Shown here piece after piece: positions 4,142 to 58,535 of a DNA stretch of 64,000 nucleotides. Under the pieces are notes generated by a model. It was not told the DNA's origin and searched no databases. It saw only the letters and a program-made list of their open reading frames with translations. Positions within the stretch are counted from its first letter, which is position 1. The number at the start of each line of letters is the position of its first letter. Source of the stretch: Lepidodermella squamata (taxonomy: Eukaryota; Animalia; Gastrotricha); NCBI GenBank assembly GCA_047495785.1, contig JBLDXI010000057.1, forward strand, positions 1-64,000, read 5' to 3'. Made by a program: the position numbers and the translations under genes.

Positions 4142-4144
4142 AGG

Positions 4145-5453: not shown

Positions 5454-5456
5454 ACT

Positions 5457-6608: not shown

Positions 6609-6615
6609 TAATCGA

Positions 6616-12110: not shown

Positions 12111-12152
12111 GATTATTGAAAATTAAATCTAATGAAATAAGAATGTAAAACT

Positions 12153-12518: not shown

Positions 12519-12525
12519 TGAGGAT

Positions 12526-30700: not shown

Positions 30701-31118
30701 GATGCACAACATCCATATCGTGCAGGTAGGCTATTCCGAGGCCTAACTGCGTCAGCCAATCAAACACTTCATCACGCGAGAAACGTTGATTCGAAAGATT
30801 AATCCTCGTGATAACCTGCCTAAGACTACCCGATCCGCAGTATTCCAACTCGAGAAACAAACGATCTTTCTTGTCGATCCAATGGCTGAAAATGCGAATT
30901 ACATTAGGGTGGCTCAAGGTAGCCAAAATCTGAGCTTCTTGAAGGACCATGCGCTGTAAGTCTGGATTTTCAGAGTTATCGCCTCGGTTTATCTTCAATA
31001 TGACATCTCGGGTGCATTCGTGCCGCTGGACATTTGCGAAACCACCGCGACCAAAATCATGCCCAATCTGCGAAAACTTTGATTTATTTCCGTCAATGGT
31101 TGACTCAAAATGCGACAT
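27791..31118 (-). CDS. Ser/Thr kinase (NEK-like) + coiled coil + C-terminal multi-pass membrane domain, copy A
   Basis: ATG at 31118 (MSHFEST). GRGGFANV, VILK, HRDLKPEN, DLG, PPE, DIWAFG; spliced through short coiled-coil exons to the hydrophobic terminal exon 27791-28468. Confidence 0.78.
29160..29365. repeat. Imperfect ~200 bp palindrome with periodic CTCG/TTC mismatches (probable non-autonomous element) in a kinase A intron
   Basis: TTTTGATCCTAATC pairs with GATTAGAATCAAAA and GTAAAC with GTTTAC, around a central CTCGGCTGCGCCTCG. Confidence 0.5.
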
Positions 31119-31901
31119 TTTAGAGTGTAAAACAAGAGTAACTTTTAGTCGAGCACCAACAAATCCGTATCTCACTTTAAACGAGGAATGAACAAAAGAA
31201 TTTTCCGATACTAACGATTTAATGTGGAAATAAAAATACAAGATTAGATAGCAAGTGTCAAGGCTGGACTCATGCCCGCCACTGTTTCGTAGTGATAACA
31301 TAGAACAGGGCCGTAACCAGCTGGTTTTTTTGGTTGTTCAAACAACTAGCAACATGAAACCTCAAAAACCCTTTTTAGCCATTTTCCCTAGAAGTAGACT
31401 TTAATTGCTGACAACATGGACGATATTTTTTCAAAATGACTGAAAATCGGCACTTGCATTCTCCTGGGAAATTGCAAACTTCACTCTACACAAACTAGCA
31501 ACGAACTATTCAGGAAACGCCGCTGATATAGACAACGTTTATTTATTTTATTCTTCTTCAATTCAGTAGCGTTCTCACCTAGGTTATATGAAGCTTATAT
31601 CCTGCACAAAAAATCGACCATCATCTAGATGCCTAGTAGCTGATCGAGGGAATACAAAAACATGGTTGCAGGCTGCAGTTCGTTATATAAAGATCGCACT
31701 TCGCAAATGTCTTCTAATCCCGCTAATTGAAGTCAATAAAGTCATATTTATTTGTTTACTCGTCATCATCTGGGTATAACAACAAATTATTGTGATTGAC
31801 AACGTTATCCAGCATCAGAAACAAAATTAGCCTCGATCTTCGTCCACAAGCCATGAAGTGTTAAGAATGCAGAGCGAATTCCCGTTTATTATCAAATAAC
31901 A

Positions 31902-34263
31902 CTAAGTACCCCAAGTTGTTCTAAGCTTTGTGAATTTCTCTTTCAAAGTCTTGGTCAAAAGTATTGGATAAAATATGAATAGCTCAGGGATGGAGTTCAA
32001 TATAATAACCCCAAAGAGATTCGGCAGGAAAATGAATGATAAGAAGATGGCTTCAGCCGAAACTTGCGTTATGTCATTGATATGGACGTGCGTTAGAGAA
32101 AGGTCGATTTTACCAACGAGGAATCTGAAAGCCATAACTGTAAAAACTACTTTTATCAGAACTAATGGGATAGCTTTTGCGATGGCTAAGATGAGGAAAG
32201 CCGCCGCGAATGCTTTGTCCCCTTTTTCATCAGGGCCAATGGCTAAATATGCTATCAATGAAACGAAGATGAGACTCCAATTGAGTAATCTCATTGAGTT
32301 TGATTTCTCAAACACAAATCCCAGCCCGCAATATGCGCTTGCACATGCGTAGAAAAGCCGAACTGAAGATAGCATTGTTCCTGTCGGGTCGAATGCGGCG
32401 AAGAAAAATATTAATGCAGACCAAACGATCTTCATCATTCCCCAAATGAAACGAATGTACAAGGGGAAGCGTGTGTATTCTCCTTTTCGATACAGCCGTT
32501 CGGCAATCCTTTCATCGATGGTCTTATCTGAGTGCGATAAGCGAATGGATAAATTCGCTGTCGCAGCATCACTACCGGCATTCTGTGGAAAAAAAGTAAA
32601 AATTTCACAACAATTCGCTTATCGACTGAAACTACTTCAAGTCTTTTTTGTCCCCGTTCTCGTCGCAGTCTGACCTGCAAAACAATTTGAAATCTCGCAT
32701 TAAACCAATGTTATGAGCTAAACGTTGACAAAAACAGAACTGGGCAATTTCGTCCAGTTCCATTCAGCGACCGATGAATTAATATTCACCTGATGTTCCA
32801 ACTCTTGATTTCTTGCCGCCAAATTTTCAAGTGCCACATTTTTTTCTTCCACCTGCAACATGTTTTGAATTAGTCTTAACAGCATTAAGATCTCCACTTA
32901 CTTCAATGGCCAGCCTGCCATTATCAGCCTCTAGCGTCTCGATTCGTTCCGTGTTTGTTGAAATCTATAATGTAAAAATTCATTAAATATTTCCAAATAA
33001 TGAATCAGCAATCAGCGTTGAATTTTAACTGCTTCTTCTATTGCAAGCACGTGCTTGTGAACGTGGCAACCAAAGCTATTCACCTACCTGATCTTCCATT
33101 TCTTGATTTCTTTCCAACAGTCTACTAATTTCCGTACTTTTATCTTCCATCTGCAATTTTTGTAATTTAGCAGTTGAATTAAGTATTCACTACATCTTTA
33201 CTTACTTCTGAGGCCAGTCTGACCTTATCAGCCTTTAGAGCCTCGATTTGTCTAGTGTTTGTTGAAATCTGTAGGAGATAGAAGTTCATTTACGGTATTT
33301 CCAACTGTATCGAATGCTAACGGCTTCTTTTAGTGAAAGAACGTGCTTGTGAACGTGGCGCTTGTCGTCGGGTGTCGCCATTAATTTAGAAGCATGTTCT
33401 AGAAACAGTGGCTTTTTTAGGATTTCCACCATAGAAAGTCTTGAACTAGGCTCCATGCACATAACACCGGTTAGCAATAAATCGCGAAGGTCAAGCCACT
33501 CGCCATCGAGATCTCGAAGTAGTCTGAAAATCGGGCGTACAACTTCATGAACATAAAATGGTCGCTGTTACCTATCTTTGACATAGTTTTCATCGATAAT
33601 CTGTTGCAGTGTTTTGATTAGCCTGCTTAACGTTACAAGTTCATAGGCGATTAAGCCAAATGCCCAGATGTCAGTTGGCGGCTTGCTCCTTTGGTTTACA
33701 TCCCTGTTTTCGGGCGGCGTGGCCCAAAGGGTTCCAATAGAGATCACTGTATTTGGAGTGCCGAGAAGCTTGGCTATTCCTAAATCGGCAATCTTAACCG
33801 TCTTGCCGTCGGTAGTAAGCAAGATATTCTCCGGTTTCAAATCCCGATGTACAATATCCATATCGTGGAGGTAGGCTATTCCTAGACCTAGCTGCGTCAG
33901 CCAATCGACCACTTTCTCTCGCGGAAATCGCTGTTCCTTCTGCCTATCGATAGCCTGCTTAAGACTTCCCGATCCGCAAAACTCCAACTCAAGAAGCAAG
34001 CGATCATTCTCGTCTATCCAATGGCTGAAAATGCGAATTACGTTAGGGTGGCTCAATGTAGCTAAAATCTGAGCTTCTTGAAGAACCATGCGCCGCACGT
34101 CCGGATAGTCCGTATGGAAGTCTCGGTTGATCTTTAATATGACATCTCGGGTACATTTTCGCAGCTCGACATTGGCGAAACCACCGTTATGAAACTTCTT
34201 GTCGTGTTCAATCTCGGTAAATTCTGATTTATTTCCATCAATAATTGACTCAATAGATGACAT
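31902..34263 (-). CDS. Ser/Thr kinase (NEK-like) + coiled coil + multi-pass membrane domain, copy B
   Basis: Kinase exon 33572-34263 and intron 33524-33571. Four 63-nt phase-0 exons (33206-33268, 33088-33150, 32902-32964, 32790-32852). Terminal exon ...DERIAERLYRKGEYTRFPLYIRFIW... is homologous to copy A. Confidence 0.82.
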
Positions 34264-34869
34264 TTTAGTTTGAAAAAATTGCAGGAAATTTTAAACGAGC
34301 ACGAAAAAGAAGTTCTTATCCTGGAGAAATACTTGAGATATAAAATGAACAGAAATATCTCCCAACGTGAAAATAGTTACAAGATTAGATAGCTGTATCA
34401 TTGGGATTCGTGCCCGTCATTGTTTGTTCTAGTATAAACAATGCTAGATTATAAGGAGAGAATATGTTCTGAGTTTTTTATTCCGAGCAGAATTCAGCCA
34501 TTTAAGCGAAAGTAGCAGCAACATTTCCTTTGGCTGCGTTCCCTATTACATTCACTTTTTCTATTACTTTTTCAGGTGGACCCGATATTTAGCGACTCAA
34601 CTGCCGCTCAGGTTTGAGTGCTATGACTATGGGACTTGGATTGTTAGATTCCTCAACACGCACGAAGAATCGTTTCGTATAATTTTAAGATCTGTTAAAA
34701 ATTTGTTAATAAATAAAAAACAAGTCCCATATAGTCATTTTTCATTTTTCATTTATTCGATATGAGACGTCATTCGCTTTCATTTCTTGTCGAACGTGAT
34801 GGAGCTGGTGATTTACGATTCCGAGGTAGCGAGTCTTATAGGGTTTATAGGGTTGACAGTTTTGCTTGT

Positions 34870-35027: not shown

Positions 35028-35300
35028 TTTAGGTATATAAGAGTGTAGAGAGCAGTAAATTTTATAATAGCACGAAAACACTCCCTATTTTTTGAGAAAT
35101 TTTTGAATACTAGGAGTGTAAAAAGTTTTTTTGTCTATAGGTATCCTATTTCAAGATTTACGGGGAAATGGAAAATTTCAAAATTAGATGCATAAGGGCT
35201 GAACTGATGCCCGTCATTGTTGCTGTAGCCATAAAATGTCACGAATAGTAGCGACTAGCGACAATCATTTTGAGAAAAACTAGATAAGGTGTGAACGAGC

Positions 35301-37985
35301 TCAAGCGAAAGCTGCAGCAACAACGCTTGTGCTGAGGCCATTCGAATATAAAACATAAAAGTGCAAAATGAAGAAAATGATCGTGGCAAATATAGCCATG
35401 AATAGATCAATCAGGCGAACCATGTTGATCATTTTGCAACAACGTATCGATCTACGCCCAGTTTCAGGGCCGTAAATCGACAGCGACAGCCACAACATCG
35501 AAAAGTTGTAGATGGTGCAGCCGACTGAGAACCACGTCAACAGTTGAACATACGTCCCCAACAGAGTATCAATTGGTTTTTTCGGGACTTCAGCCATGAC
35601 GAGATTCTGGAGTACGGCAGTTGCCAAAATCAGAGTTATACCGGCCGATGAGCGATCGGGTATGTCAGGTGGCGACAGAAATACAATTAGGTTAAGCGCA
35701 GCGAGGGCAGAAGCGGGGACTGCCATGTTTTTGACGTAGTAGCGGGGGTTGCGAATTAGGGATACTTCGAAGGTCACTGTCGAAACAGTAGCGCCGTTGT
35801 AGAAACCCTGCCCGGTGTAGTTTCGAGTTGAAACCAAGTCCCAACCTGATCCATCGTCTGCAAAGTTGTCAAACAGGAAAATTAGACTTTCTTGATCAAA
35901 AACGACTAAATTGATTGAGGTCATGAGGGCGAACGTGAATTGGCACGTCTGAGTGTCGAAAGGGAAGAGCGTCAAATCCAGAGCACAGTTAGCGTCCAGA
36001 ACGCCCTCTTTCGTCCAATAGAATTCGAAAGTCCTGTTGATAGCGAGCTGCTTTGATGAGACCAACATCAAATAGTCATCGCTTGCTATGATGTCCTTCA
36101 TCATCGTATTGGATCCAGCTGCGGTCATGAATCTGTATTTAGGCAGCCAAAGGTCATCAGGCTTCGTGACTTCGACTTGTTCAAAATCCTTGCCAGTTGG
36201 TTCTTTTGGGTCGAAACAACCCCACGGGCAGGTATCGACTCGCCATTTCATAACCAACATCGCGTTGACTGAGATCTGCTCGTCAACTGTTGAGATTCCA
36301 TTTAGACTGGTCACTTGGAACCCGGCAATTAACTTCATCGGCAGATTATTCGTTATTGGCGCTCGAAGTTTCGAGCTGAATAAAACGCAATCGATATACT
36401 TTTGAGTCACGAGATAACGCGGCTCTGGATCACTTAGACGTGGCACCAAGTTCTCGCTTATGGTCTTACCCGTCAATTTCGTGTCGTTCGGCTTGGTGTA
36501 ACCGCAGGCGTATTTGATGTTAGCAATGTCGTCTTGGCTCAGAACGCCATCGTAGAGCAGGAAACATGAGAATGACGTTGCTTCTGTCGACGATTGAAAA
36601 CCGATTTGCAGGGTACTTTTACCGGTGTCGTGAGCCCATTTTTCAGGCGATACCACAGACTGTGATGCGGAGATGGTAGTATCGAACTGAATGTTTTGAC
36701 TGTAATTCATGACCGTGCCTTTATCCAAGTCGACAACGAAAGCAAACATTTGCCACGAATTGGAGTGGCTGTAAGACGCTATTGCCTCGGAGTCATCCGC
36801 CATGAAAGAGAAATCAGCGGGGTCATCTACAGCGGCATTGTGGGGCTTGATCGACACCTTTGACTCTGAGCAGCGAACTTCGAACAGCCCGGTGACTTGG
36901 GCTAGCTTTACGTCGTCTCCAACAACGCCGCATTTCGCCTTGACGTAGAAGGCCACGGTGAAACTTTTCTGAGGCATCTTGACATCGCCATACGCAGCTA
37001 GGATACCACTCGCAGCAAAACTCCCCGTTGAGTACGGGCTGTCGACTGAACTTAGCGTAACCCTGTAATTCTGGCTCGGTTGTCTCGGCTTGTACGTGAT
37101 TTTCCCACTTTGATCAGTGCCAATGAGTTTCGTTGCTGACGAAAGGGGCCAATATCCCAAGAGAGATCTCGAATTCGGGACCTTCGTTAAGTCGAGTTTA
37201 GACTTGAATACCAAGTTGTCATTTTCCGACGGCGTCGGTAGCGCTGATTGGCACGGTGCTAAGAAAAGCTGAGCGATTTCATCGCTGTTAAGTTCGGTTG
37301 CAAAGAGCGAGACACAAGACATCATTCTGCCTCGAAGAAAATCCAGTTTACACTGAAGCTCGTTGTCGCCACAAATAGTCGGGTTCTCGTCTGTTGGCTT
37401 GCCAATCGTTAAGGTAGCTGTCGAATCCGTCGTGATGTTGATTTTGACCGGCGCCGTACACGCCTGTGATTGAACCCGCCGAGTTGTCGAATCGATTCGA
37501 TACCGCGTAACCTGCCCGTTTGCGTTATTGTACGTCAACGCATGCAGGTAAACATCGGCGTTGGAGTCGCCCGTTCCCGACAGAACAGCGCACGGTTGCA
37601 GTTGGATGTTCTTGTTTGCTAAAAAGCCTTCGCTTGAGATCGATATGATGCCATCTAATGACACTGTGGCTGTGGGCCCCTCCATAGCGGTGTGGTAGGC
37701 TATTGTGAATGACTTGGCCATAACGAGCCTTACATCGTAGGTGGCGATCGGCGCCTCCTCGTCCATGGATAGGTAGAACCCGGTGTCAACGTTTTTCGGG
37801 GCGGTGAACATCGGGGAATAGATCGATTGAGTCGGGCGGCTAATTTTTGCTCGCATGATTCCTTCAAGTTTGTTGTAGCCGTCAAGTGGCCAGAATCCCA
37901 TGAGAAAGTCTTGGCCAGGCAAATTAGCAGGCACATCGAAACCCGCCACCACAGTCGCGAAGGCCAAAAGAAGGATGGCTTCCAT
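35301..37985 (-). CDS. Cys-loop (pentameric) ligand-gated ion channel subunit with two N-terminal LamG/pentraxin-like domains, copy 1; single coding exon
   Basis: Signal MEAILLLAFATVVAG (ATG 37985). Repeats LMGFWPLD..FTIAY..LNSDEIAQL and LLGYWPLS..FTVAFYVK..WQMFAFV..LYDGVLSQDDI. Channel part has LWLP, Cys-loop CALDLTLFPFDTQTC, RNPRYY and four TM helices. Confidence 0.9.
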   Translation of the reverse strand: MEAILLLAFATVVAGFDVPANLPGQDFLMGFWPLDGYNKLEGIMRAKISRPTQSIYSPMFTAPKNVDTGFYLSMDEEAPIATYDVRLVMAKSFTIAYHTAMEGPTATVSLDGIISISSEGFLANKNIQLQPCAVLSGTGDSNADVYLHALTYNNANGQVTRYRIDSTTRRVQSQACTAPVKINITTDSTATLTIGKPTDENPTICGDNELQCKLDFLRGRMMSCVSLFATELNSDEIAQLFLAPCQSALPTPSENDNLVFKSKLDLTKVPNSRSLLGYWPLSSATKLIGTDQSGKITYKPRQPSQNYRVTLSSVDSPYSTGSFAASGILAAYGDVKMPQKSFTVAFYVKAKCGVVGDDVKLAQVTGLFEVRCSESKVSIKPHNAAVDDPADFSFMADDSEAIASYSHSNSWQMFAFVVDLDKGTVMNYSQNIQFDTTISASQSVVSPEKWAHDTGKSTLQIGFQSSTEATSFSCFLLYDGVLSQDDIANIKYACGYTKPNDTKLTGKTISENLVPRLSDPEPRYLVTQKYIDCVLFSSKLRAPITNNLPMKLIAGFQVTSLNGISTVDEQISVNAMLVMKWRVDTCPWGCFDPKEPTGKDFEQVEVTKPDDLWLPKYRFMTAAGSNTMMKDIIASDDYLMLVSSKQLAINRTFEFYWTKEGVLDANCALDLTLFPFDTQTCQFTFALMTSINLVVFDQESLIFLFDNFADDGSGWDLVSTRNYTGQGFYNGATVSTVTFEVSLIRNPRYYVKNMAVPASALAALNLIVFLSPPDIPDRSSAGITLILATAVLQNLVMAEVPKKPIDTLLGTYVQLLTWFSVGCTIYNFSMLWLSLSIYGPETGRRSIRCCKMINMVRLIDLFMAIFATIIFFILHFYVLYSNGLSTSVVAAAFA

Positions 37986-39531
37986 GATTCCGAATACGAA
38001 AAAAATGTTCACCTGAGTAAATAAAGAATCTTGCTCGAGCTCGAAAAATTGCAAAAAATGCGGTGAGCGAGATTAATTTTGAAATATCGCCAGTCCGAGT
38101 GAGTGGTTTTATTGCTACACAAAATTGCGTTTATTTAGCTGTAGAAACAGACAGATATATAGCTATGTGTTTTGCCTGCCAGGCCGTTTTAGTGGGCGTG
38201 GTGTAATATATTGTTCGGTTTGAGGATTTGCCAACCTCCGCAGATCGAAAACCCGCCCAGCATCAATATGTTGCACTGATTTTAATATTTCTGCCCAGGG
38301 TTAGGCTGAAACCCGAATATTTTCATACAAAAGGGCTGTAGAAATCCTAGATCAGTCCAAAGTAAAATCGAAATTGTGATAGTTGACAAGCGAAAAATGC
38401 GGTTTGCCAAAAAATCTAAAGGGGGCGTGTTAACTCGAAGACGAATAATTCTTTGATTTCATGATGCCCTTGATTAATTGATTTTGTAAATTTTGATTTG
38501 TTTCAAGTTCAGACAGCTACCACGCTCCCATCCTCCTTAAAATGAGGGAAAACTCCAAAATTTAGGAAATTTCACCAAACCCAACATTTTTCTTGATATA
38601 ACGGTCACTTTTGGAAGAATGGAGTATCGTGGGCGGTGGGGAAAGCTGGGGAGTTTTAAATGCAGGCAAATCCCTATCGTTAGCGACGCGCCAAAACAAC
38701 CAGTTTGATGATTCATTCGATCGTACTTCAAGGAGCCTAGCGTAATGATGCAGTACGTTCGGCTTTTTTGAGCACTGAATGTACTGATCGTAATTTGCAT
38801 TTACGTTCAATGGCCGAACGTACTTACCAAGAAAAATCTATAAACAGTAAAGTTGTTGTTTTGGCGCGTCGAAAACGCTATCTCTACAACTTCTTCAACT
38901 TCGCCAATTTTTAACGGGAAAAGTCAAATGGCTGCGCAGGTATTTAAACATCAAAATCGTTACATCTATCGTCGAAAAACGCATTGGAAAAAAACCAAGT
39001 TCGCAAACTTTCCCCGTATAAAAACTGAATGGCCAGCGGAAGCATAAGAAAGTAAAGTGGGACAAAAAGCACAAGAACAACTTTTAGTTGGTGAAACTAT
39101 GTAGATCGTTGTTCAACTTTTCCCAGGAATTTTTCTAAATCAAATTTTGAATTGATTTTCTCCCTTTTATGTGGTGAGTTGAAATTGCAAACCAATAGCA
39201 ACACAATTCCCTATGTTATAACTGCGCAAATTTTGATATAGGAATCTTTTAAATGGGAACTGTGGCGAGTGTGCCTTGCGGAAGAAATCAAACACAGTTT
39301 TTCTAACTACCTATCTCATGTTATAGTAGTTAATGAAACAAGAAGGATAAAACAGAGAGGCTTAGGCTTGGGTAAACAACAGCGACTGTTTCAAGATGCG
39401 TTCCGATGGTAAGCTCTATTCTTAATATATCGCATACCATACGGCTCGCAAGTGTAGTTAATCAGCTGTGTAGGAAATATCTGGTATACTTTCTGTCCGG
39501 TGGAAAAATTAATCAAAATTCCAATAAGCTG

Positions 39532-40294
39532 GCACATTTTCCGGCCCGCCGGTGTTTCCTCCGCGCGCGCGCTCCTATTGGTTGGGGCTTATTGCGCAAC
39601 ATTTCAAGATAATTATAGCCTACCCCCGCGCGCGCGCACTCGAACGCGCCTGAGCGCCCGTGCGCTAAGTCTATGACAGTTTGCTAAGTCGAAGACGAGC
39701 ATGCTGCATGCTTTTCAACAAAAATATAAGCCCACCCTTGAAAAGGATGTTTGGTATTGTTAATACGACAACAAAATTGACTGCATCGTGACGGCCTACA
39801 CGTCTTTATTTGATGACTTATCTGTTCGTATCCAAAAACACCGGCCATAAGAATTTAAAAAGTTGATTTAAGAAAGGATGCGATGGATTTTTTTCGAGGA
39901 ACCCGCTTTTTTTTATGAAAAATTATAAAATAAAAAAAATAAACTGGAAATAGCCATTTTAGGCGCGCTATTTTAGGCTATTTTAGGGTTATGTTGAACA
40001 CTTCAGGGAAAATTCGGTTCAAATTTAAAATCAACTTGAAACACCAAATACCAATGAAAAAAAGTGAAAATACGAAAATTTCGCCTTTTATTCCACCCAC
40101 CACGCATATCCAACCCCTAGCGCGCCGTTATTCTCCTGAATTTCGGACTTGTACATTTTCCAGCGCGCGCGCGCGAGGGAGGGCTGCAATTATTTGTTGC
40201 GCAATAAATGCGAGCGAGGCGTATTTACGCGTAAAACGAGCCAACCAATAGGAGCGCGCGCGCGGAGGAAACACCGGCGGGCCGGAAAATGTGC
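39532..40294. mobile_element. Non-autonomous TIR element (Mutator-like MITE), ~53 bp TIRs, 9 bp TSD AATAAGCTG
   Basis: GCACATTTTCCGGCCCGCCGGTGTTTCCTCCGCGCGCGCGCTCCTATTGGTTGG at the left end is perfectly inverted at 40241-40294; AATAAGCTG at 39523-39531 and 40295-40303. Confidence 0.9.
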
Positions 40295-40443
40295 AATAAG
40301 CTGTGCTTTAGCCATTCTGCCTTTCATTAAATCTGGGCAAAGCGGGGCACTTAAGAAGAAATAATTTTAAAACACATAATATTATTTTATTTTTTTATTA
40401 AAATATTTAGGAGGAATTTTCTTGGCTTGGCATTTATTTCAAA

Positions 40444-40971
40444 ATTGAAGTTTGACGTTCGGGTAACTGGCGAGGGAAGCAACGCCGCACATATTAAGGC
40501 CACTTTCAAATCGAATGTAGCCATCCTCGCCCCAATCAGGCCCATAGCTATAGAAGTTAAGTACACATTATAAAAATCCTGTCAATTAAATCAATATTAT
40601 CTCACCTATTTTTAGCTATCCAAGCCCACTTTCTCGCGCTATAGTCGTAAGCATGGCCAACTATAAGCTGTAAAATCAAGAATTTTTCACGAAATCAGTC
40701 AAACGTGACGGAACTCACCAAGGCGTGGTTCAGTTGCGATGCGTTGCATAACGGCTCGTTATAGATACCATCCAAATAAAATTGAATTGAAAAATGGCTC
40801 GCGTCAACACCGATTGAAACAGGCCCGAAATATAGAGCCTAAATATCAAGAAAAATCAACTAAAAATGATTTCGGCTGAAAATGGTTAGCCACCTTCCAC
40901 AACTCGAACTCGTCGTTTTCTTTGACTTTGCAGTAAGGATTCGAGTCATCCAGCGGTGCGTAGAGTTTAGC
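40444..40971 (-). pseudogene. 3' fragment of the cathepsin gene at 47584-48959
   Basis: Close nucleotide copy of about 47584-48107, including introns; the 5' half is missing. Confidence 0.85.
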
Positions 40972-41598
40972 ATATTGAAAAAATTGAAAGTTTGCATCAC
41001 CAGCCTGATTACGGATTCACATTCTCTGATAAAGCAACATGCGAGACGTGTGAGTTTATTACTCTCTGTTTTAACTTGTTATTAAATCTTAATAAGCAAA
41101 TAGGGGTATATATCGGCGACTGCGAGTCTTCATCCAGATTTGCTCCACTATACCGTAACGGGCTGAAGCGAGACGAAGCAGAATCAGCTTGTGCTGGCTT
41201 GAGTTCTCGGCTGTCTTGGATTCAGAGCCCAGACGTGCAAGCTGAGGTTGCGAAGTAAGCTTGCTAGTTGATAGAACTGTTCCGAAATCGTTTCGATTTC
41301 AATAGACCTCAGCCTGCCTTGGGGTTGCAACGGCATGTGGATTGGTGGTATGAACGGTCTTGGCGCCAGCAATGGAACCTATTACTGGGACATCGAACTT
41401 CCGATCGGCTGGCAAGGAAATTGGGAAGCAAGTAATATCATCAACTAGATGCTGTGCGGGACGAGTTCGAAGGATGGAAGCACGAATTCGGCATTCATTA
41501 CCGTGACTCCATCGTCGAACAATTCCGCTGGGAGACGGGATCTTTAAAATCGTGACGCCATTGAAAGGTACAACTTGAACTGAGGATTGGTCGAAAAC
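40972..41598 (+). pseudogene. Fused fragments of a C-type-lectin gene (about 40972-41436) and a cathepsin prodomain exon (about 41440-41598)
   Basis: Similar to about 20000-20470 (TGCATCACCAGCC.GATTACGGATTCAC; PWGCNGMWIGG) and to about 52165-52325 (GACGAGTTCGAAG.ATGGAAGCACGAATTCG). Confidence 0.8.
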
Positions 41599-41795
41599 GC
41601 CTTTATTTTGTCAATGAAAAATAATAACTATTTCGGAGTTCTTGAAAATTGATATAATCCTGCTATTTGAAGTCAATAAAGTCATCTGCTTACTCGTCAT
41701 CTTCAGGGTATAACAACAAATTATCAAGCGCATCAGAAGCATAATCGGCCCCGTTCTTTGTCCATGAGCCGTCAAGAAATATGAATGCAAGTTTA

Positions 41796-43928
41796 CTATA
41801 AATTAATACCTCTCCAAGTTGTTATAATCTGTGTAATTTTCTCAAGGAAAATTTTGGCTAACAAAGTTGGATAGACTATGAACAACTCAGGTATCGAGTT
41901 CAATATCACAACTCCTAATAAATTCGGCATGAAAATAAATGATAACATGAGAGCTACATCCGAGAACTGCGTTTGAGAAAGAGCGATTTGACTGACAAAG
42001 AATCTGAAAGCAACAGCGGTGAAAACTAATTTTATCATAGCGAATGGGATAGCTTTTGCAATAGCAAAGACCAGGAAAGCCGTCGCGAAATAGTTTTCGA
42101 TCGGTCGAATTGCTATATTTGCAATCAATGAAACCGCAATGAGACTGTAATTGATAAATCTAATTGAGTTTGAGTTTTCTAACAACAATCCAAGCCCGCC
42201 ATACGCAAATGCACATGCGAATTGAAGCCGAACTAAAAATGTCATTGCTCCTGTCGGGTTGATCACGCAGTATACTTCAAGTCTCATTTCCGGGACTCTT
42301 ATCTGTAGAAAAGAAGTTAACACCTTGGTAAGTAATGTTATTCTTAAAGCATGTTACACCATCAGCGTCGATGAATAACTCAGACTTGCATTTGAAGGTA
42401 AGCGGTGACAAGTAGAAATTAATAGGTAATTTGTTTACTATTGCTTTTCACTTGCAACGTGTCACATTGAAACGGATGTAGGAATAAGGAAGTCTTAATC
42501 CGATTTATTCAACGACGCTAATGCTCGTTTAATTGGCTCGGAAATGGAATGTTTCAGATAGATACATGGGCCCGTCCCCAGCTTAATAAAGGTCAACATT
42601 GAAAGATGTAGGGCTATTCAGATTTGTCGTCCAACTTTGCAAGCAGCCCGGGTTATTAATTTTATACCATTTTTTCCAGCGCTCTTCATCGTGACCAGCT
42701 TTTCGTCAGTCACAGCTAAGCTATTTACCCGCCCGAGATATTAGGCAAACCTGATGTTCAATTTCTTGATTTTCTACTATCAGAATGTTTACTTTAAGGC
42801 TTTTTGACTCGATCTGTAACATATTTTCAACCAGTCATAACAGAGATTTTTTAGCATGCTGCAATTACTTCAAGGGCCAGACTGGCGTTATTAGCTTCCA
42901 GCGCCTCGATTTGTGTAGTGTTTGCTGAAATCTACGTGAAAAAAACATTCGAACCCATTTTATACTAAAAACAGCGAAATCTGACATTTTCTTTCAGAGA
43001 AAGAACATGCTTGTGAACGTGGCGCCTGTAGGCGGGTGTCGCCACCAATTTCGAAGCTTGTTTTTGAAATAGTGATGTTTGCAGGATTTCTGCCATTGAA
43101 AGTCTTGAACTAGGCTCAATGCAAATAACTCCGTCAAGCAATAATTTGCGAAGCTCAAGCCAATCATCACCGACATTTTCAACTATTCTGAAATTGGACG
43201 TGGAACTTAATCAGCCGAAAGTTTTGTCCTCCGTTACCGTTTTTCCACTTCGTTTGAACGCAAAATGTGCTCGAAATATTGGACACTTTCCCAAATGAGC
43301 AGGCTTAACGTTACGAGTTCATAGGCAATCAGGCCAAATGCCCAAATGTCGGTTGGCGGTTTGCTCCTCTGGTTTTCATCGTTGTATTCCGGCGGCATGT
43401 AACAGTTCCGACTGTGTACGCGGTATTTGGTGTACCGAGCAGCTTAGCTATTCCCAAGTCGGCAATCTTAATCGTCTTACCATCGCTTGTGAAAAGGACA
43501 TTCTGAGGTTTCAAATGCCGGTGCACAACATCCATGTCATGCAGGTAGGCTATTCCGAGGCCCAGCTGGGTCAGCCAATTCACCACTTCATCACGTTGGA
43601 ATTGCTCTTTCACAGCCTTCTTCGCCGTAATAGCCTGCCCAAGACTTCCCGATCTGCAGTATTCCAACTCAAGCAGCAAATGACCATTATCGTCGATCCA
43701 ATGACTGAAAATGCGGATAACGTTCGGGTGGCTCAATGAAGCTAAAATGTCAGCTTCTTGAAGAACCATGCGCTGCATGTCGGGATAATCAAGGTTAACG
43801 CCTCGGTATATCTTTAATATGACATCTCGTGTACATTTGCGCAGCTCGACATTGGCGAAACCACCGCTAGCTAACTGCTTGATGTAAACAAATTCTGATT
43901 TATTACCATCAATATCTGACACAATCAT
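41796..43928 (-). pseudogene. Kinase-coiled-coil-TM copy C, probable pseudogene
   Basis: Catalytic HRD changed to HRH; 4-nt deletion relative to copy A in the activation segment (GGAACTGTTACATG vs GGAACATACTGTTACATG) causes a frameshift; the ancestral ATG (43933) is followed by TGA. Confidence 0.8.
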
Positions 43929-44059
43929 GACATTTTGGTGTTGGGTAGTATAAACGACATCTGATTATAAGGAGGGAATATGTTCTGATTGGAATTTTAC
44001 ATCAAAAGCGGAATACATTTGGGCGAAAGGAGCAGCAAAATGGCTATCAAGATGAAACA

Positions 44060-44216
44060 TAACGGTGCAGAACAAAGAAAGCGATCAAGCAACCACAGCC
44101 AAGCATAAATTGGTAAGGCGGACGATGTTGATTATTTTGCCGAAACAACGAATAAATCGACAGCGACAGCCACAACATCGAAAAGTTGTGGATGATGCAA
44201 TGCAGCCGACTGAGTA
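44060..44216 (-). pseudogene. Short degenerate fragment of the Cys-loop receptor C-terminus (M3-M4)
   Basis: ATCGACAGCGACAGCCACAACATCGAAAAGTTG is nearly identical to 35476-35508 (NFSMLWLSLSIY). Confidence 0.6.
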
Positions 44217-44424
44217 CCAGGTCAGCAGTGTTACTAGAAGCGTACAAAAGTATTCAGCTATGGACCTACTCTATTCCAAGAGTCACGAGGAAATGAAAAA
44301 CGTCAAGATTTTTTGTAATTAGGGCTGAAATCCACGGCATTCGCGTAATAATGCTCTTGGTCAGAGTATTGATACGCGAACGCCCTGTTATGCCCGTCAT
44401 TCTTGCCGCGGGGTGTGAACGAGC

Positions 44425-47103
44425 TCAAGCGAAAGCTGCAGCAACAAGGCTTGAACTCAGGCCATTCGAATACAAAACATGACAGTGCAAAATCAAGAAA
44501 ATGATCGTGGCAAACGTAGCCATGAATAGATCAATAAGGCGAACCATGTTGATCATTTTACAACAGCGTATCGATCTACGCCCAGTTTCAGGGCCGTAAA
44601 TCGACAGCGACAGCCACAACATCGCAAAGTTATAGATTGTGCAGCCGACTGAAAACCACGTCAACAGTTGAACATACGTCCCCAACAGAGTATCAATTGG
44701 TTTTTTCGGGACTTCAGCCATGACTAGATTCTGAAGTACGGCAGTCGCCAAAATTAGAGTTATACCAGCAGCAGCGCGGTCGGGAACGTCGGGTGGGGCT
44801 AGAAACACGACGAGGTTCAGCGCAGTGAGGGCAGAAGCAGGGACTGCCATGTTTTTGATGTAGTAGCGGGGATTTCGAATTAGGGATACTTCAAAGGTCA
44901 CTGTAGAAACCGTTACGCCATTGTAGAAACCCTCACCGGTGTTGTTCCGAGTTGAAACCAAGTCCCAGCCTGATCCATCGTCTGCAACATTGTCAAACAG
45001 GAAGATAAGACTTCCTTCATCGAAAACGACCAAGTTGATGGAGGTCATCAGGGAAAACTTAAATTGGCACGTTTGCGTGTCGAAAGGGAACAGCGTCAAG
45101 TCTAGAGCACAATTAGCATCCAAAACGCCCTCTTTCGTCCAGTAGAACTCGAACGTTCTGTTGATAGCGAGCTGTTTTGATGAGACCAACATCAAATAGT
45201 CATCGCTTGCTATGATGTCCTTCATCATCGTATTGGATCCAGCTGCGGTCATGAATCTATATTTAGGCAGCCAAAGGTCATCAGGCTTCGTGATTTCAAC
45301 TTGTTCAAAATCTTTGCCAGTTGGTTCCTGTGGATCAAAACAACCCCATTCGCATGTGTCGACTCGCCATTTCAGAACTAGCATCGCGTTGACTGAGATC
45401 TGCTCGTCAACAGTTGAAATGCCGCTAAGACTAGTGACTTGAAACCCGGCTGTTACTTTCATCGGCAGATTATTGGTTATTGGCGCTCGTAGTTTCGAGC
45501 TGAATAAAACGCAATCGATACGCTTTTGAGACACGAGGTAACGAGGTTCCGGATCACTGAGGCGAGGCACTAAGTTCTCGCTTATGGTTTTACCCGTCAA
45601 TATCGTTTCATTCGCCTTGGTGTAGCCACAGGCGTATTTGAGGTTCGCAATTTCATCTTGGCTCAGAACACCATCATACAGCAGAAAGCATGAGAATGAA
45701 GCTGCTTCCTTCGACGATTGAAAACCGATTTGCAGGGTACTTTTACCGGTGTCGTGAGCCCATTTTTCAGACGATATCGCAGACTCCGTTGCGGAGATGG
45801 TGGTATCGAACTGAATGTTTTGAGTGTAATTTACCACTTTGCCTTTATCCAAGTCAACAGTAAAAGCAAACATCTGCCACGAATTGGAGTGGCTGTAAGA
45901 CGTATTTGCCTCGGAGTCACCCGCCATGAAAGACAAATCAGCGGGGTCATCGGCAGCGCCATTGTGCGGCTTGATCGACAGCGTAGACGCTAAGCAACGA
46001 ACTTCAAAGAGCCCGGTGAGTTGAGCTAGTTTTATCTCGTAATCAACAACGCCGCAATTTGCCTTGACGTAGAAGGCCACGGTGAAACTTTTCTGTGGCA
46101 TCTTGACATCGCCATACGCAGCTAGGATACCCATCGAAGTGAAACTCCCGGTTGAGTACGGGCTGTCGACGGAGCTCAGCGTAACCCTGTAATTCTGGCT
46201 CGGTTGCCTGGGCTTGTACGTGATTTTCCCATTCTGATCAGTGCCAAGAAGTTTCGTGGATGACGAAAGGGGCCAGTATCCCAAAAGAGATCTCAACTTC
46301 GGGACCTTTGTTAAGTCGAGTTTGGACTTGAATACCAAGTTGTCATTTTCCGACGGCGTTGGCAGCGCTGATTGGCACGGTGCCAAGAAAAGCTGAGCGA
46401 TTTCGTCGCTACTAAGTTCGGTTCCGAAAAGTGAAATGCAGGACATCATTCGGGTTCGCAGCGCATCCATTTTACACTGAAGCTCGTTGTCGCCGCACAT
46501 AGTCGGATTCGCATCTGTTGGCTTGCCAATCGTCAAGGTCGAATCCGTCGCGATGTTAATTTTCACCGGCGACGCGCACGTCTCTGATTGAACCCGCCTA
46601 GTTGTTGAGTCGATTTGATACCGCGTAACCTGCCCATTTGTGCTATTGTACGTCAAAGCATGCAGGTAAACATCAGCGTTGGAATCACCCGAACCCGAAG
46701 GAACAGCGCACCGTTGCAGTTGGATGTTCTTGTTTGCTAAAAAGCCTTCGCTTGAGATCGATATGATGCCATCTAATGACACTGTGGCTGTGGGTCCCTC
46801 CATAGCGGTGTGGTAGGCGATTGTAAATGATTTGGCCATGGCAACTCTCACCTCGTACGTTGCGATCGGCGCTTCCTCGTCCGTCGATAGATAGAACCCG
46901 GTGTCAACGTTTTTCGGGGCGGTGAACATCGGGGAATAGATCGATTGAGTCGGACGGCTAATTTTTGTTCGCATGATTCCTTCAAGTTTGTTGTAGCCGT
47001 CCAGGGGCCAGAATCCGATGAGAAAGTCTTTGCCAGGCAAATTATCAGGTAGGTCGAAACTCGCCACCACGGTCGCGAGCACCAAAAGAAGTCTGGCTTG
47101 CAT
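44425..47103 (-). CDS. LamG/pentraxin-tandem Cys-loop receptor subunit, copy 2; single coding exon
   Basis: Closely similar paralog of 35301-37985; ATG 47103 MQARLLLVLATVVAS; same Cys-loop and TM motifs. Confidence 0.9.
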   Translation of the reverse strand: MQARLLLVLATVVASFDLPDNLPGKDFLIGFWPLDGYNKLEGIMRTKISRPTQSIYSPMFTAPKNVDTGFYLSTDEEAPIATYEVRVAMAKSFTIAYHTAMEGPTATVSLDGIISISSEGFLANKNIQLQRCAVPSGSGDSNADVYLHALTYNSTNGQVTRYQIDSTTRRVQSETCASPVKINIATDSTLTIGKPTDANPTMCGDNELQCKMDALRTRMMSCISLFGTELSSDEIAQLFLAPCQSALPTPSENDNLVFKSKLDLTKVPKLRSLLGYWPLSSSTKLLGTDQNGKITYKPRQPSQNYRVTLSSVDSPYSTGSFTSMGILAAYGDVKMPQKSFTVAFYVKANCGVVDYEIKLAQLTGLFEVRCLASTLSIKPHNGAADDPADLSFMAGDSEANTSYSHSNSWQMFAFTVDLDKGKVVNYTQNIQFDTTISATESAISSEKWAHDTGKSTLQIGFQSSKEAASFSCFLLYDGVLSQDEIANLKYACGYTKANETILTGKTISENLVPRLSDPEPRYLVSQKRIDCVLFSSKLRAPITNNLPMKVTAGFQVTSLSGISTVDEQISVNAMLVLKWRVDTCEWGCFDPQEPTGKDFEQVEITKPDDLWLPKYRFMTAAGSNTMMKDIIASDDYLMLVSSKQLAINRTFEFYWTKEGVLDANCALDLTLFPFDTQTCQFKFSLMTSINLVVFDEGSLIFLFDNVADDGSGWDLVSTRNNTGEGFYNGVTVSTVTFEVSLIRNPRYYIKNMAVPASALTALNLVVFLAPPDVPDRAAAGITLILATAVLQNLVMAEVPKKPIDTLLGTYVQLLTWFSVGCTIYNFAMLWLSLSIYGPETGRRSIRCCKMINMVRLIDLFMATFATIIFLILHCHVLYSNGLSSSLVAAAFA

Positions 47104-47583
47104 AGTTCCAAGTGCGAGAAAAATGTTCAACTGTGCGTGAGCAAATAAGAGATCTTTGTCGAGCTCAAAAAAATCACAAAAATGCGGAAAGCGAGATTAA
47201 TTTTGAAATCACGCCAGTCTGAGTGATTGGCTTTATTGTTGCATAAAATTGCGTTTATTTAGCTGTAGGGCCGAATAGATAGCTTTGTGTTTTCGTGGGC
47301 GTGTTGCGTGGTGTAATATTTTGACTAGTTTGAGGATTTGCCAACCTCCGTGGATCGGAAACCCGCACAGCATCCAACTGTATAGCGCTGAATTTAATAT
47401 TTTCTTCCAGGGTTTGGTGAAACTTTTTGTCCAAGGGAAAATCAATCAAAATTTCGATAAATTAGCTGTGCTGGTAAATCTGCCCTTATTAAATCGGGGC
47501 AAAATTGTAAAACACATTATACAATTTTTTTATTTTTTATTAAAATATTCAGAAATGTTCTTGAATTGAAATATATTTCAAAA

Positions 47584-48959
47584 TTAGAGTTTGACATTTG
47601 GGTAACTGGCGAGGGAAGCAACGCCGCACATATTAAGGCCGCTTTCAATTCGAATGTAGCCATTCTCGCCCCAATCAGGCCCATAGCTATATTAGAAATT
47701 CGACATAAAAAAATCGTGTCAATTGAATCTCTATCTCACCTATTTTTAGCTATCCACGCCCACTTTCTCACGCTGTAGTCGTAAGCATGGCCAACTATAA
47801 GCTGCAAAATCAAGAATTTTTTCCACGAAATCAGTCAAGCGTGTCGGAACTCACCAAAGCGTGATTCAGTTGCGATGCATTGCATAACGGCTCGTTGTAG
47901 ATACCATCCAAATAAAATTGAAACGAAAAATGGCTCGCGTCAACACCAATCGAAACAGGCCCGAAATATAGCGCCTAAATATCAAGAAAAATCAAATAAA
48001 AGTGATTTCGGCTGAAAATGGTTAGCCACCTTCCACAACTCAAACTCGTCCTTTTCTTTGACTTTGCAGTAAGGATTCGAGCTATCTAGCGGTGCGTAGA
48101 GTTTAGCCGTTGCCTTGCAGCCTTTCCCAACAGCCAGTGGGTCGTAGGGATAGGCGTCCCATAGGTTTAAACCACCTGTTGATTTGACGTAGTCATACGC
48201 GAATGTCATCAAGCCGCCAATGCAGCCAGCATTGCCAAAGCTTGACGAGCAATCGAGAAGATGCTTTAAATTTGGAAAATTTAAAATTTAAAAGAAATAC
48301 TTAATTTTATTATTATTAATTATTCTTCAATTAATTTAATTAATTAATTTTTAATTAATAATGAATGTTTTTTTTTGTTTATTTTTTTTACCTGTGCTGA
48401 GATTGTTAAATTGTTGCCCGTCCATATCAATAGGCGGCTCTCGATGGCGCCGGCAGCCGTGAGCGCCCAACACGCGCCGCACGGGCCCTGGCTGCGGATG
48501 TACGGCTGGACGTAGCCGCCGATGCGCCAGTCGATGCTGAACTGCAGCGACGGCGGCATGGGCGCGGGACACTCGTACCCCACTGATCGTTTATCTCGCC
48601 GAGCCGCCGCCTCAGGCACCGATTTTAGGCCCAGAATCGCGGCGTATTCGCTGGGTGACACATCGGCGAACTGGTTTGTGCCGAGTCTGAAGCCTCGTTT
48701 CGCCGCATTCCTCGCATTATGGTCGGAAATTGAGGCTAAATTCGAGTTGAAAATCCAACGCCGCCTTTCATGCTCTTCGGCGTGTTTGTAACTTTTCCGA
48801 AATTTCACTTTATATCCTTCCCAATCGATAGGGTCATATCTGATAAAAATAAATCTGTGAAAACTGATACGTATTCAAATTCAGAATTTACCGAAAATTG
48901 AGGCCGGCAGTTGCCTCGTTGGTAATGAACAATAACAAGGCTATTATGGAATATTCCAT
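47584..48959 (-). CDS. Papain-family (C1A) cathepsin L-like protease, single I29 prodomain
   Basis: Signal [11 protein letters not shown]; [16 protein letters not shown] prodomain; [18 protein letters not shown] and [16 protein letters not shown] (NSW is NSY here). Confidence 0.88.
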
Positions 48960-49495: not shown

Positions 49496-51740
<2,245 letters not shown>

Positions 51741-52044: not shown

Positions 52045-54395
52045 ATGCGTCCGGAAATTTTAGTAATTTTTCTTCTTTTTAAAATTAATAAATTTCAGGC
52101 CTATGGTAATAAAGCTTATCCAGCTTAAAATTACGATTTTAGTGATTTTGTTTCAGAAATAAACCAACAACAAGATGCTTTGCGAGACGAGTTCGAAGAA
52201 TGGAAGCACGAATTCGACATTCATTACCGCGATTCTATCGTCGAGCAGTTCCGCTACGAGACGTGGCTTCAAAATCGCGATGCTATCGGCAAGTACAACT
52301 CGGACAGAGGATTGCCTGAAAATCGTCGCCGAATTTTGAACCGATGCAGCGACCTTAATTTATGCCAAATCGACGAGACAAAGGACAAGTGCGCGATTTA
52401 CTACGACGTTGTTAAGCTGGACACGGGTGAGGTGATTCCACTGAAGCGGAAAGAGCCGAAGATTCGGCTGAAAGCGGCCGGGCCGCCGCACAAAACCGAC
52501 CCGGATTTTTTGCGATATTGCAAGCGATTTAAACGAAAGTTCAAAAGTGACTCTGAGATGAAGCTACGTTACGAAATTTGGAAGAAGCGATTCGATGAAA
52601 TCAAGCGGCATAACGCGAAGAAGCAGGTGGCTCATTTGATGACAGATACCGAATTTTCTGATCGAACTGATTCGGAGTTGAAATCGTTTTTCGGCCTGAA
52701 GGTGCCCGCTGATGCGAAATTTTCCGAGCCGCGCTACGTCCTACGCGGCGCTGCGCCTCAGACGCTGAATTTGACGCGTAATATCGGCCCGCCGAAGAAT
52801 CAGGGCGGCTGCGGGGCGTGTTGGGCATTCTCGACTGTGGCCGCTCTTGAGTCGAAGCATTGCCGGCTGCTGCGAACAGCTAACCCGGCAGCCGAGTGCC
52901 GGCGGTTCTCTGAACAGGAACTTATCGACTGTGCGACGACGACAGCTACGCCATCTTACAATAATATAGGTATATAGGTCAAATGAATAAAAATTGAAAA
53001 TTGGTTAAAGATGACTCTCTACATATTATAACTGCCTTGTACCCTAAGGCAGGGCTTCTCAACCCCTAACCCTTGGCGACCCCAAAATTAAAATTCTTAA
53101 CCAGGCTGCAGCCCCTAGCGGTTTTTTCCAATTTTTTTGCCTTTTTCGGTGTGAGAAAATTCCAAAATTATGCGTCCAAGCTATAAAATATCACCTAATT
53201 TCCACCATTTCCCCCTATAATTTCTTCAATAGCCTTGAGATGATGTCGGCTCTCAATCGCATTTTCAGCCGGTTTTCATTCGAATAAAATTGGACGCGAA
53301 CGAAGAGAGCTTTAGCTAACTCCTCGTTTCCTGGACTAAAAATGAACCAAATTTTCGCAATATTTAATTTTTTATGAAAATCATCACGCGACCCTCAGCT
53401 GACTCGGCGACCCATGAAATAAGGGCCCACTACCCCCAGTTTGAAAAAGTCTGCCCTATGTAGAATAGTCTTTCTGGCCATCCGATATCGGGGAAATCAC
53501 GTTTTTATCGATAAAATCTGGGAAATGATAATTAAAATCGATATCGGATAAATTTACAGAAAAATTCAGTTTTTTTTACAATTTTTTCAAAATTGTTTCG
53601 AAGCAGCTAATTAATTAATTGTTAACACATTTTTTTTAATTAATGAATTCTTTCAAATTTATTCTTGCCAGATTACGATCGAATTTTCTCGAAATTGAAT
53701 CTATAATAATTTATTACCCTGTTCCAAAGCGTTCCTCATTTTCTCTTCATTTTTCTTCATTTTTTTTATCAAGGTTGTGGCGGCGGTTGGATGCCGAATG
53801 CGTTCAAATACGTGTTGGATAACCGCGGCATCAACTCGGACTTGTACGCCTATGTCGAGAATCAAAATCCCAGGTGTTGCCGATTTCGAAACGAGTCGTT
53901 CGCTCGGCTGCAATCATCGCACCGACTCATCAATTGCACAGATGAGGAATGCGTAATTAATGTTAGAATAATTTTTCTACCAATTTCTGATTGGGTCAAT
54001 GACTGTTTTTTACTCGTCAGGCATTGAACGATTTTCAAGGCTGTGTTTGCGCGGCTGTAAACGCTTTGCCGAGTCTTCAACAATACAAAAGTGGAATCTA
54101 CTCGCCGTCGACGTGTTCAACGGCGGTGAATCACGCTATTGTAAGAGAGTTATAATTTTCTGCTATTTCTGAGAAATTTTAATTTTTTTTTAGAATATTT
54201 GCGGTTACACTGAGAACGCGTGGATTATCCGAAATTCATGGGGACCAAGTAAATGCTATTTTTCCCTTTTTAATTTTTTTCAAAATGAATGTTCCAGATT
54301 GGGGCGAGCGAGGCTACTACAGAATGGCTCGTGGGCGTGGAAACTTGTGCGGCCTTTGGTCATACATCAGCTACCCGGTTATGACCTCAATTTGA
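52045..54395 (+). CDS. C1A cathepsin-like protease with tandem I29-like prodomains
   Basis: [37 protein letters not shown]. Confidence 0.88.
53050..53453. mobile_element. Degenerate hAT-type MITE in a cathepsin intron
   Basis: Ends CAGGGCTTCTCAAC ... GTTTGAAAAAGTCTG; imperfect 8 bp TSD CCCTAAGG / CCCTATGT with central TA. Confidence 0.6.

Positions 54396-56349: not shown

Positions 56350-58535
<2,186 letters not shown>

Follow-up and report, generated by a model that had tools for sequence, protein, structure and literature searches.

The window analysed here, a stretch of 64,000 nucleotides from contig JBLDXI010000057.1 of the gastrotrich Lepidodermella squamata, houses on its minus strand two paralogous genes, copy A and copy B, each of which encodes a subunit of a Cys-loop receptor, or pentameric ligand-gated ion channel (pLGIC), preceded in the same open reading frame (ORF) by two additional repeats. 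The order of domains in copy A is signal peptide, repeat 1, repeat 2, linker, Cys-loop extracellular domain (ECD) and a transmembrane domain (TMD) of four helices, M1 to M4; copy B has the same architecture (Table 1). The components are individually known, and the concept of such a fusion is known from bacteria; this fusion in a eukaryotic Cys-loop receptor appears to be new. Cys-loop receptors are among the best-studied channels, and a eukaryotic subunit more than half of which consists of accessory extracellular domains, maintained by purifying selection in two paralogues, contradicts the rule that such additions are confined to prokaryotes (PMC9897478, PMC12664993). We think it probable that the genes specify a cation channel bearing a crown of accessory domains that bind or sense something extracellular and modulate gating.

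Counted from the first ATG, neither ORF contains a stop or a frame break, and the intact duplicates of about 890 amino acids reported in a first-pass annotation of this DNA were found uninterrupted at the positions claimed, on the minus strand. The two proteins are 88% identical with a single two-residue indel, and the duplicated DNA (35288-38312 versus 44412-47423, 87% identity by blastn) reaches from 13 nt beyond the stop codon to about 330 nt 5' of the ATG. Comparison of A with B by the Nei-Gojobori method gave 0.39 synonymous (dS) and 0.057 nonsynonymous (dN) substitutions per site, and hence a dN/dS of 0.147; taken part by part, this ratio is 0.15 in repeat 1, 0.24 in repeat 2, 0.07 in the linker, 0.06 in the ECD and 0.15 in the TMD. 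The ratio of the proportions of nonsynonymous and synonymous differences (pN/pS) is 0.6 or less in all 40-codon windows, including those of the N-terminal half, and in these windows there is no positive or diversifying selection in the repeats, of the sort that an immune-type receptor might show. The low dN/dS in repeats, junction and channel shows that purifying selection has acted on both halves and on the junction between them since the duplication. Repeats and channel are selected as one coding unit.

The predicted signal peptide of copy A consists of MEAILLLAFATVVAG before FD, as judged from hydropathy and from the small residues at -3/-1, and the cleavage context is VAG followed by FD in copy A and VAS followed by FD in copy B. 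Hydropathy also places hydrophobic segments at N-terminal residues 4-22 and at M1 (754-772), M2 (780-800) and M4 (861-879), M3 having been located by alignment; between residues 23 and 750 there is no hydrophobic segment, and hence no internal signal peptide before the ECD. With no signal sequence immediately ahead of it, the channel must rely for its topology on the N-terminal signal peptide, which argues that the fused polypeptide is the functional product. The signal peptide, two repeats, full Cys-loop domain and four transmembrane segments first described for these genes are, on the combined evidence of ORFs, Pfam, hydropathy and alignments, present in both copies.

It might be objected that the fusion is a young functionless chimera, or that repeats and channel are really separate products which appear joined through a coincidence of reading frame or a faulty gene model. 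The gene is known from its sequence alone; mollusc and cnidarian gene models in which nicotinic acetylcholine receptor (nAChR) domains are joined to odd partners (dynamin, GAIN) may in part be annotation artefacts (PMC6896357); and the decayed third copy that lies beside copy B shows that copies can die at this locus. Yet at a dS of 0.39 both copies have stayed open over more than 890 codons, and dN/dS is 0.15 in each half and 0.07 at the junction between them. Given the base composition of the window, chance would produce 894 codons without a stop with a probability of only about 1e-24, and the channel taken alone would lack a signal peptide. Both readings are therefore disfavoured, and we regard either as highly improbable.

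Sequence and profile comparisons indicate that repeats 1 and 2, of about 230 amino acids each, are homologous to one another: BLASTP aligns them with an E of 2e-5, and hhalign aligns their profiles with a probability of 98.1% and an E of 1e-13 over 201 columns. The repeat motifs picked out in the first-pass annotation recur in their alignment, as GxWPL, SFT(I/V)A(Y/F), W..FA, L.IG and SC.L(F/Y)...L...(D/E)I, and the order of these motifs (a W-P-L-D start, an FT.. strand, a W..(F)A strand, L.IG and a final L...(D/E)I) is presumably the order typical of LamG_3. AlphaFold2 models were made for single repeats, from alignments of eight sequences, and both came out mostly beta. When the model of repeat 2 was compared with the PDB by Foldseek, 464 matches at E <=1e-3 were obtained, the best of them (E 2e-7, TM(query) 0.46) being the lectin-like N-subdomain of clostridial neurotoxin binding fragments. 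Repeat 1 matched the lectin-like domain of trypanosome sialidases (E 1e-4) and further the toxin Hc-N subdomain, legume lectins, CBM40 and C-reactive protein, the last a weak match (E 2e-3) seen with repeat 1 only. Among the best 50 matches listed, the PDB fold matches of both repeats all belong to the concanavalin-A (ConA)-like clan. In BFVD, a database of predicted viral structures, the top named matches of repeat 2 were to the Concanavalin A-like lectin/glucanases superfamily and to the LamG-like jellyroll, with a best E of 1.4e-8. The window repeats thus have in common with the Laminin_G_3/ConA-like superfamily, the clan of LamG, pentraxin, clostridial toxin Hc-N and sialidase lectin-like domains, a predicted two-sheet jelly roll, and at the level of fold they may be described with moderate confidence as concanavalin-A-like, LamG_3-type sandwiches.

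The term LamG/pentraxin-like, under which these domains were first reported, accordingly needs qualification. A ConA-like or LamG_3-type fold is predicted, and Foldseek places the repeats in a LamG-like fold class, whereas membership of the LamG and pentraxin families fails by sequence. Assignment to LamG was rejected because the window repeats fall under every Pfam threshold, so that Pfam offers no family for the repeats of residues 17-500; assignment to the pentraxins was rejected because the signature H-x-C-x-S/T-W-x-S/T is absent from both proteins, again with no Pfam match. As applied to these modelled repeats, "lectin" is a fold label, and any link between the pentamers of pentraxins and those of channels is speculation.

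A single relative of the N-terminal half came to light. When residues 1-530 were compared exhaustively by phmmer with 1.84 billion representative proteins, one match was returned, P0001 (E 6e-5, 24% identity), an unnamed metagenomic eukaryotic protein. Its repeats are of the type seen in the N-terminal half of the channels and show the same motifs; it differs from the channels in possessing four repeats and one C-terminal transmembrane helix and no channel domain, either on the protein itself or downstream of its gene; its neighbours on a eukaryote-like metagenome contig are tetraspanin and CEP76 genes. In alignment, repeats 3-4 of P0001 pair best with channel repeats 1-2. Laminin_G_3 (PF13385) was detected solely on repeat 2 of P0001, and there sub-threshold (E 0.029, 15 bits against a cut-off of 27.6). 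Together the repeats of P0001 and of the channels define a small, uncurated extracellular repeat family whose inter-repeat linkers carry conserved Cys; this linker and the conserved SC..L(F/Y) motif are particular to the family. A pattern search of metagenomes with the three closer repeats found no relative, and a search with the repeat pattern in viral contigs and prokaryotic genomes likewise found none, so there is no sign of a prokaryotic or viral origin of the repeats.

The remainder of each protein is recognisably a Cys-loop receptor subunit. Pfam Neur_chan_LBD matches copy A with an E of 4.7e-13 (49.5 bits) and copy B with an E of 2.3e-14 (53.8 bits; cut-off 26), and the N-terminal helix of the ECD is present, so that the ECD is complete and the added domains are attached in front of it. 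The closest solved structure is the alpha7 nAChR (E 2e-16, M1-M3 aligned), followed by other nicotinic subunits, ACR-23 and 5-HT3A, and altogether 75 distinct PDB pLGIC sequences match at E <=1e-8. An alpha10-like subunit of Haliotis (P0002, a mollusc nAChR-like protein) matches at 4e-10. Identity amounts to 24-28% with any nAChR and to 24-32% with any other pLGIC found. The Cys-loop is canonical, a C-x13-C with an FPFD core, running in copy A as C667-CALDLTLFPFDTQTC-C681 and in copy B from C665 to C679, and this feature, together with an acidic -1', Leu 9' and Val 13' in M2, is shared with alpha7 and with lophotrochozoan nAChR-like genes. From nAChRs, in contrast, the window channels differ in having some 520 extra N-terminal residues, no loop-C Cys pair, Met at three of the five aromatic-box sites, and an M3-M4 loop of about 18 residues (about 839-856 in copy A) where nAChRs have 80-250. 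M2 reads PDR-SSAGITLILATAVLQNLVMAE, numbered P(-2') D(-1') R(0') SSAGITLIL(9')ATAV(13')LQNLVMAE, with L787 of copy A as the 9' Leu; the outer Glu ring residue, the acidic -1' and Val 13' match cation channels. By selectivity-filter rules the pore is probable, not certain, to be cation-selective, its signature being a mixed one of Pro at -2' and Asp at -1'. The sole adjacent Cys pair lies in the M3-M4 loop, within RRSIRCCK and beside basic residues (849-850 in copy A, window 35500-35510; 847-848 in copy B), and could be a palmitoylation site.

Loop C reads FYNGAT in copy A and FYNGVT in copy B. Compared with alpha7 and P0002 it is short by two residues, and neither copy has the Cys pair, the place of which is taken by Gly-Ala in copy A. 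The first-pass observations of a loop C without vicinal Cys, of the acidic -1', Leu 9' and Val 13', and of a very short M3-M4 loop are all correct according to the alignments. In the aromatic box of copy A the Tyr of loop A has become M620, the Trp of loop B M688 and the Trp of loop D M576; Y729 of loop C is kept and the second loop-C Tyr is gone, which leaves one of the five. The proposal that these are agonist-binding subunits of an acetylcholine-gated nicotinic receptor was rejected on these grounds, the missing Cys pair and the depleted box. The three substitutions by Met, together with the short loop C, make acetylcholine an unlikely agonist, and it is probably not what gates the channel.

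The genes might still encode non-alpha (complementary, structural) subunits of an acetylcholine or choline receptor, working only in heteromers with alpha subunits encoded elsewhere, with the added domains serving to localise or modulate them. Non-alpha subunits are normally without the loop-C Cys pair, the best matches of the window channels (alpha7 at 2e-16 and the Haliotis subunit at 4e-10) are nicotinic, and many intronless, tandem nAChR-like genes are found in lophotrochozoan expansions (PMC6896357). However, the Trp of loop D, which belongs to the complementary face, is itself replaced by Met, and loops A and B have lost their aromatics as well; identity to any nAChR is just 24-28%; and tblastn of the window shows no partner alpha subunit. 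We therefore consider a purely complementary nicotinic subunit to be quite unlikely.

A scan of metagenomes with the channel alignment gave 23 pLGIC loci at 23-32% identity, all of ordinary size, and when a hidden Markov model of the repeat was run on their flanks a repeat was found upstream in none of the 23. The nearest ordinary-size channel relatives, at 21-32% identity, are on two metagenomic eukaryotic contigs, L003 and L002. The gene on L003, a contig of 1.4 kb, is the nearest of all and has a short loop C without a Cys pair and a loop A Met; L002 (the contig of P0003) bears two ordinary small pLGIC genes with very short M3-M4 loops and no room for repeats. These sequences point to a wider orphan pLGIC subfamily as the source of the fused genes. 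A word-indexed search of 5.8 billion proteins with the full-length query gave no match, nor did the same collection yield the channel region in a candidate of full-length size at a strict E <=1e-5; with the channel alone as query there were two weak matches, the prefilter being ill-suited to so divergent a protein.

If the genes do specify a cation channel with a sensing crown, one polypeptide would constitute one subunit of a pentameric Cys-loop channel. Cleavage of the signal peptide would leave two jelly rolls of about 230 residues outside the cell, connected through some 30 linker residues to the helix with which the pLGIC ECD begins, and five such subunits, either as A homomers or as A/B mixtures, would together hold ten accessory domains as a crown over the vestibule. 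With Asp at -1', Leu at 9', Val at 13' and an outer Glu ring, the pore would probably be selective for cations, and the classical agonist pocket would have lost its cation-pi cage and with it gating by acetylcholine. The accessory domains would then be the most likely site at which an extracellular partner binds and sets gating allosterically, candidates for this partner being a glycan, a protein, matrix material or a divalent ion; a parallel would be the bacterial channel DeCLIC, whose N-terminal domain modulates gating kinetics. That glycans, microbes or matrix gate the channel, as was originally suggested, is offered here as a hypothesis. It is tempting to go further and to suggest that agonist sensing has moved from the neurotransmitter pocket to the appended lectin-fold domains, so that the channel is opened or tuned directly by a macromolecular or glycan ligand that comes from a microbe, from the matrix or from an adjacent cell, and that this is the first such eukaryotic pLGIC, arisen independently of bacterial channels with N-terminal domains; in this full form we consider the proposal doubtful.

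The accessory domains need not take part in gating. They might be passive, a tether, spacer, or assembly or trafficking module that fixes the channel, for example, to matrix or to an adjacent cell, with gating left to a small ligand in the Met-lined pocket, to pH or to ions. Such a role would be in keeping with established knowledge that domains of ConA-like and LamG fold often serve in contacts between proteins or with the matrix, and with the nature of the sole relative, P0001, as a plain surface protein without a channel; the ECD is moreover the most constrained part of the protein (dN/dS 0.06), which suggests that its pocket is still used. Linker and repeats are, on the other hand, also constrained in both copies, a point that fits any function and so does not discriminate, and gating is indeed influenced by the N-terminal domain in DeCLIC, the only precedent that has been studied (PMC12664993). 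A wholly passive role for the added domains seems to us unlikely.

Several observations weigh against a cation channel with a sensing crown. The fused architecture is absent from both protein collections, from the 23 metagenomic pLGIC loci, from the viral contigs and from the prokaryotic genomes, and the fused protein is known here as a gene, at one locus, on which the claim rests. An exact look-up found none of the 12 proteins encoded in the window (the two channels and ten other ORFs) in the searched collection, from which it follows that this collection samples the source genome poorly, and probably its whole clade as well; the lack of a second occurrence in other taxa, among the collections searched, is for this reason weak evidence. 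As to the repeats, searches at E up to 10 brought up neither a Pfam family for them nor, with a profile of eight repeats, any PDB sequence, and the models are of moderate quality only, with a predicted local distance difference test score (pLDDT) of 65.5 and a predicted template modelling score (pTM) of 0.73 for repeat 2, and a pLDDT of 52.5 and a pTM of 0.61 for repeat 1. No binding site for sugar, Ca2+ or another ligand was identified in the repeats, residues not being mappable at such model confidence. As to the channel, Pfam Neur_chan_memb stays sub-threshold, at 14.6 bits in copy A (E 0.041) and 18.5 bits in copy B against a cut-off of 28.1, and the -2' position of M2 is occupied by Pro, a residue typical at that position of anion channels under established selectivity-filter rules, so that the call of selectivity is not a clean one.

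The closest known parallel in architecture is DeCLIC, a pLGIC from a Desulfofustis deltaproteobacterium with an N-terminal domain of two jelly-roll lobes that contributes roughly half of the mass of each subunit and modulates gating (PMC12664993, PMC9897478). In DeCLIC and in the window channels alike, two beta-sandwich lobes lead into a pLGIC ECD and four transmembrane helices, and hardly any of the chain forms an intracellular domain; about half of the subunit is N-terminal addition, and a cationic pore with acidic rings is predicted. However, DeCLIC is a bacterial Pro-loop channel and the window channels are eukaryotic Cys-loop channels, closest to animal nAChRs; the lobes of DeCLIC are eight-stranded jelly rolls resembling the Tk-SP domain, collagenase CBD and PliG (PMC12664993), whereas those of the window are larger, at about 230 amino acids, and ConA-like or LamG_3-type. 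DeCLIC is not among the best 50 fold matches of either repeat, though distant similarity beyond the best 50 is possible. Homology to DeCLIC was rejected in view of this and of the Cys-loop and nAChR best matches, and the likeness is best regarded as convergent, a functional analogy and not a homology. A looser analogy is provided by the ionotropic glutamate receptors of the AMPA and NMDA types, which also carry an extra extracellular layer above the agonist layer that binds modulators and tunes gating (a parallel cited in PMC9897478), and which differ from the window channels in belonging to an unrelated superfamily, in their periplasmic-binding-protein fold and in being tetramers.

No eukaryotic pLGIC bearing N-terminal domains of the LamG or ConA type is described in the literature searched, and the N-terminal domains of prokaryotic pLGICs are stated to be "not found in eukaryotic relatives" (PMC9897478; PMC12664993 likewise). 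The first-pass statement that animal pLGICs normally lack large N-terminal additions is in line with both papers. A few nAChR gene models include other domains, among them dynamin and GAIN, and none includes repeats of the window type (PMC6896357). Accessory sensor layers would on this evidence have joined the pLGIC scaffold at least two times independently, and the genes would offer a tractable eukaryotic case in which to study the coupling of an extra extracellular layer to the gate. The degenerate agonist pocket hints at a ligand other than a classical transmitter, and if it is true that the appended domains are the sensor, then the range of stimuli that pLGICs transduce would extend to macromolecules or surfaces.

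Intronless, tandem expansions of nicotinic-type genes have been described in lophotrochozoans and are also counted in cnidarians (PMC6896357), and the window genes resemble the mollusc nAChR-like expansions in being both intronless and tandem (PMC6896357). A plausible origin of the fusion, judged from the sequences, would be that a retro-copied, intronless orphan nicotinic-type subunit gained a two-repeat piece of a P0001-like, lineage-specific surface protein, and that the fusion was afterwards duplicated locally in tandem. The locus also contains the remains of an older event. Directly downstream of copy B lies a decayed 3' end, covering M3-M4, of a third channel copy, which tblastn aligns with residues 813-871 of copy A (E 0.001-0.006) and which shares 69% DNA identity with 35345-35544 by blastn. 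Three paralogous Ser/Thr-type protein kinase genes, with 74-75% DNA identity, belong to the same repeating unit as the channel genes. Taken with the triplication of this kinase unit, the 69% remnant suggests that the 87% A/B duplication came later and overwrote most of an older channel copy that dated from the 74-75% duplication of the kinase unit.

Table 1. Positions of the channel genes, their parts, neighbouring genes and metagenomic relatives. Positions refer to the window unless a contig is named.
Feature	Position	Strand	Residues	Evidence or remark
Copy A, complete, intronless gene	35301-37985	-	894 codons + stop	ORF list, Pfam, PDB matches
Copy A, predicted signal peptide	37941-37985	-	1-15	Hydropathy, small residues at -3/-1
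Copy A, repeat 1	37236-37937	-	17-250	Predicted concanavalin-A-like beta sandwich with extra Cys-rich insertion; AlphaFold, Foldseek
Copy A, repeat 2	36486-37202	-	262-500	Predicted concanavalin-A-like / LamG_3-type beta sandwich; AlphaFold, Foldseek, BFVD
Copy A, linker and start of ECD N-terminal helix	36369-36485	-	501-539	Aligns with pre-beta1 helix region of P0002
Copy A, extracellular ligand-binding domain	35745-36368	-	540-747	Pfam Neur_chan_LBD, alignments to alpha7 and P0002
Copy A, Cys-loop	35943-35987	-	C667-C681
Copy A, TMD, M1-M4	35304-35744	-	748-894	alpha7 alignment (M1-M3), hydropathy
Copy A, M2	35589-35660	-	P776-E799
Copy B, complete, intronless paralogue	44425-47103	-	892 codons + stop	Architecture as copy A; ORF list, Pfam LBD
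Copy B, repeat 1	46360-47055	-
Copy B, repeat 2	45610-46326	-
Copy B, ECD and TMD together	44428-45492	-
Decayed M3-M4 3' end of older, third channel copy	44055-44234	-		tblastn, blastn
Ser/Thr-type protein kinase genes (three)	30031-31162, 33202-34308, 42865-43939	-
Hydrophobic ORF family (three)	27791-28504, 31902-32462, 41796-42323	-
Cathepsin-L-like gene	48344-48808	-
Cathepsin-L-like genes (four)	49845-50702, 52180-52977, 56550-57311, 59945-60763	+
Protein-primed family-B DNA polymerase (PF03175)	7205-9869	-		Split across four frame-shifted ORFs; Polinton/Maverick-like element
Pox_A32-like packaging ATPase	4310-4792	+		Polinton/Maverick-like element
RING-finger ORF	12153-12518	-		Polinton/Maverick-like element
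Deoxynucleoside kinase	12526-13053	-		Polinton/Maverick-like element
P0001	contig L001, 7045-10155	+		Four repeats and one C-terminal transmembrane helix
Ordinary-size channel relative	contig L003, 484-1140	+
Ordinary-size channel relatives	contig L002, 818-1747 and 2678-3544	+

Elsewhere in the window, a decayed Polinton/Maverick-like element with densely packed ORFs occupies about 240-13050; besides the genes given in Table 1 it includes several ORFs of 300-450 amino acids without a Pfam match. Beside each kinase copy stands a member of a family of hydrophobic ORFs, co-duplicated with the kinases at 74-76% DNA identity and without a Pfam match, which probably encode a multi-pass membrane protein. 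In the third kinase ORF (43329-43928), which may be broken, the kinase domain is lost beyond about position 160 of the profile. Each of the five cathepsin-L-like ORFs comprises an I29 propeptide and the first 60 or so positions of Peptidase_C1 and then ends, as expected at an intron; kinase and cathepsin-L-like domains alike break off in mid-ORF as at introns.

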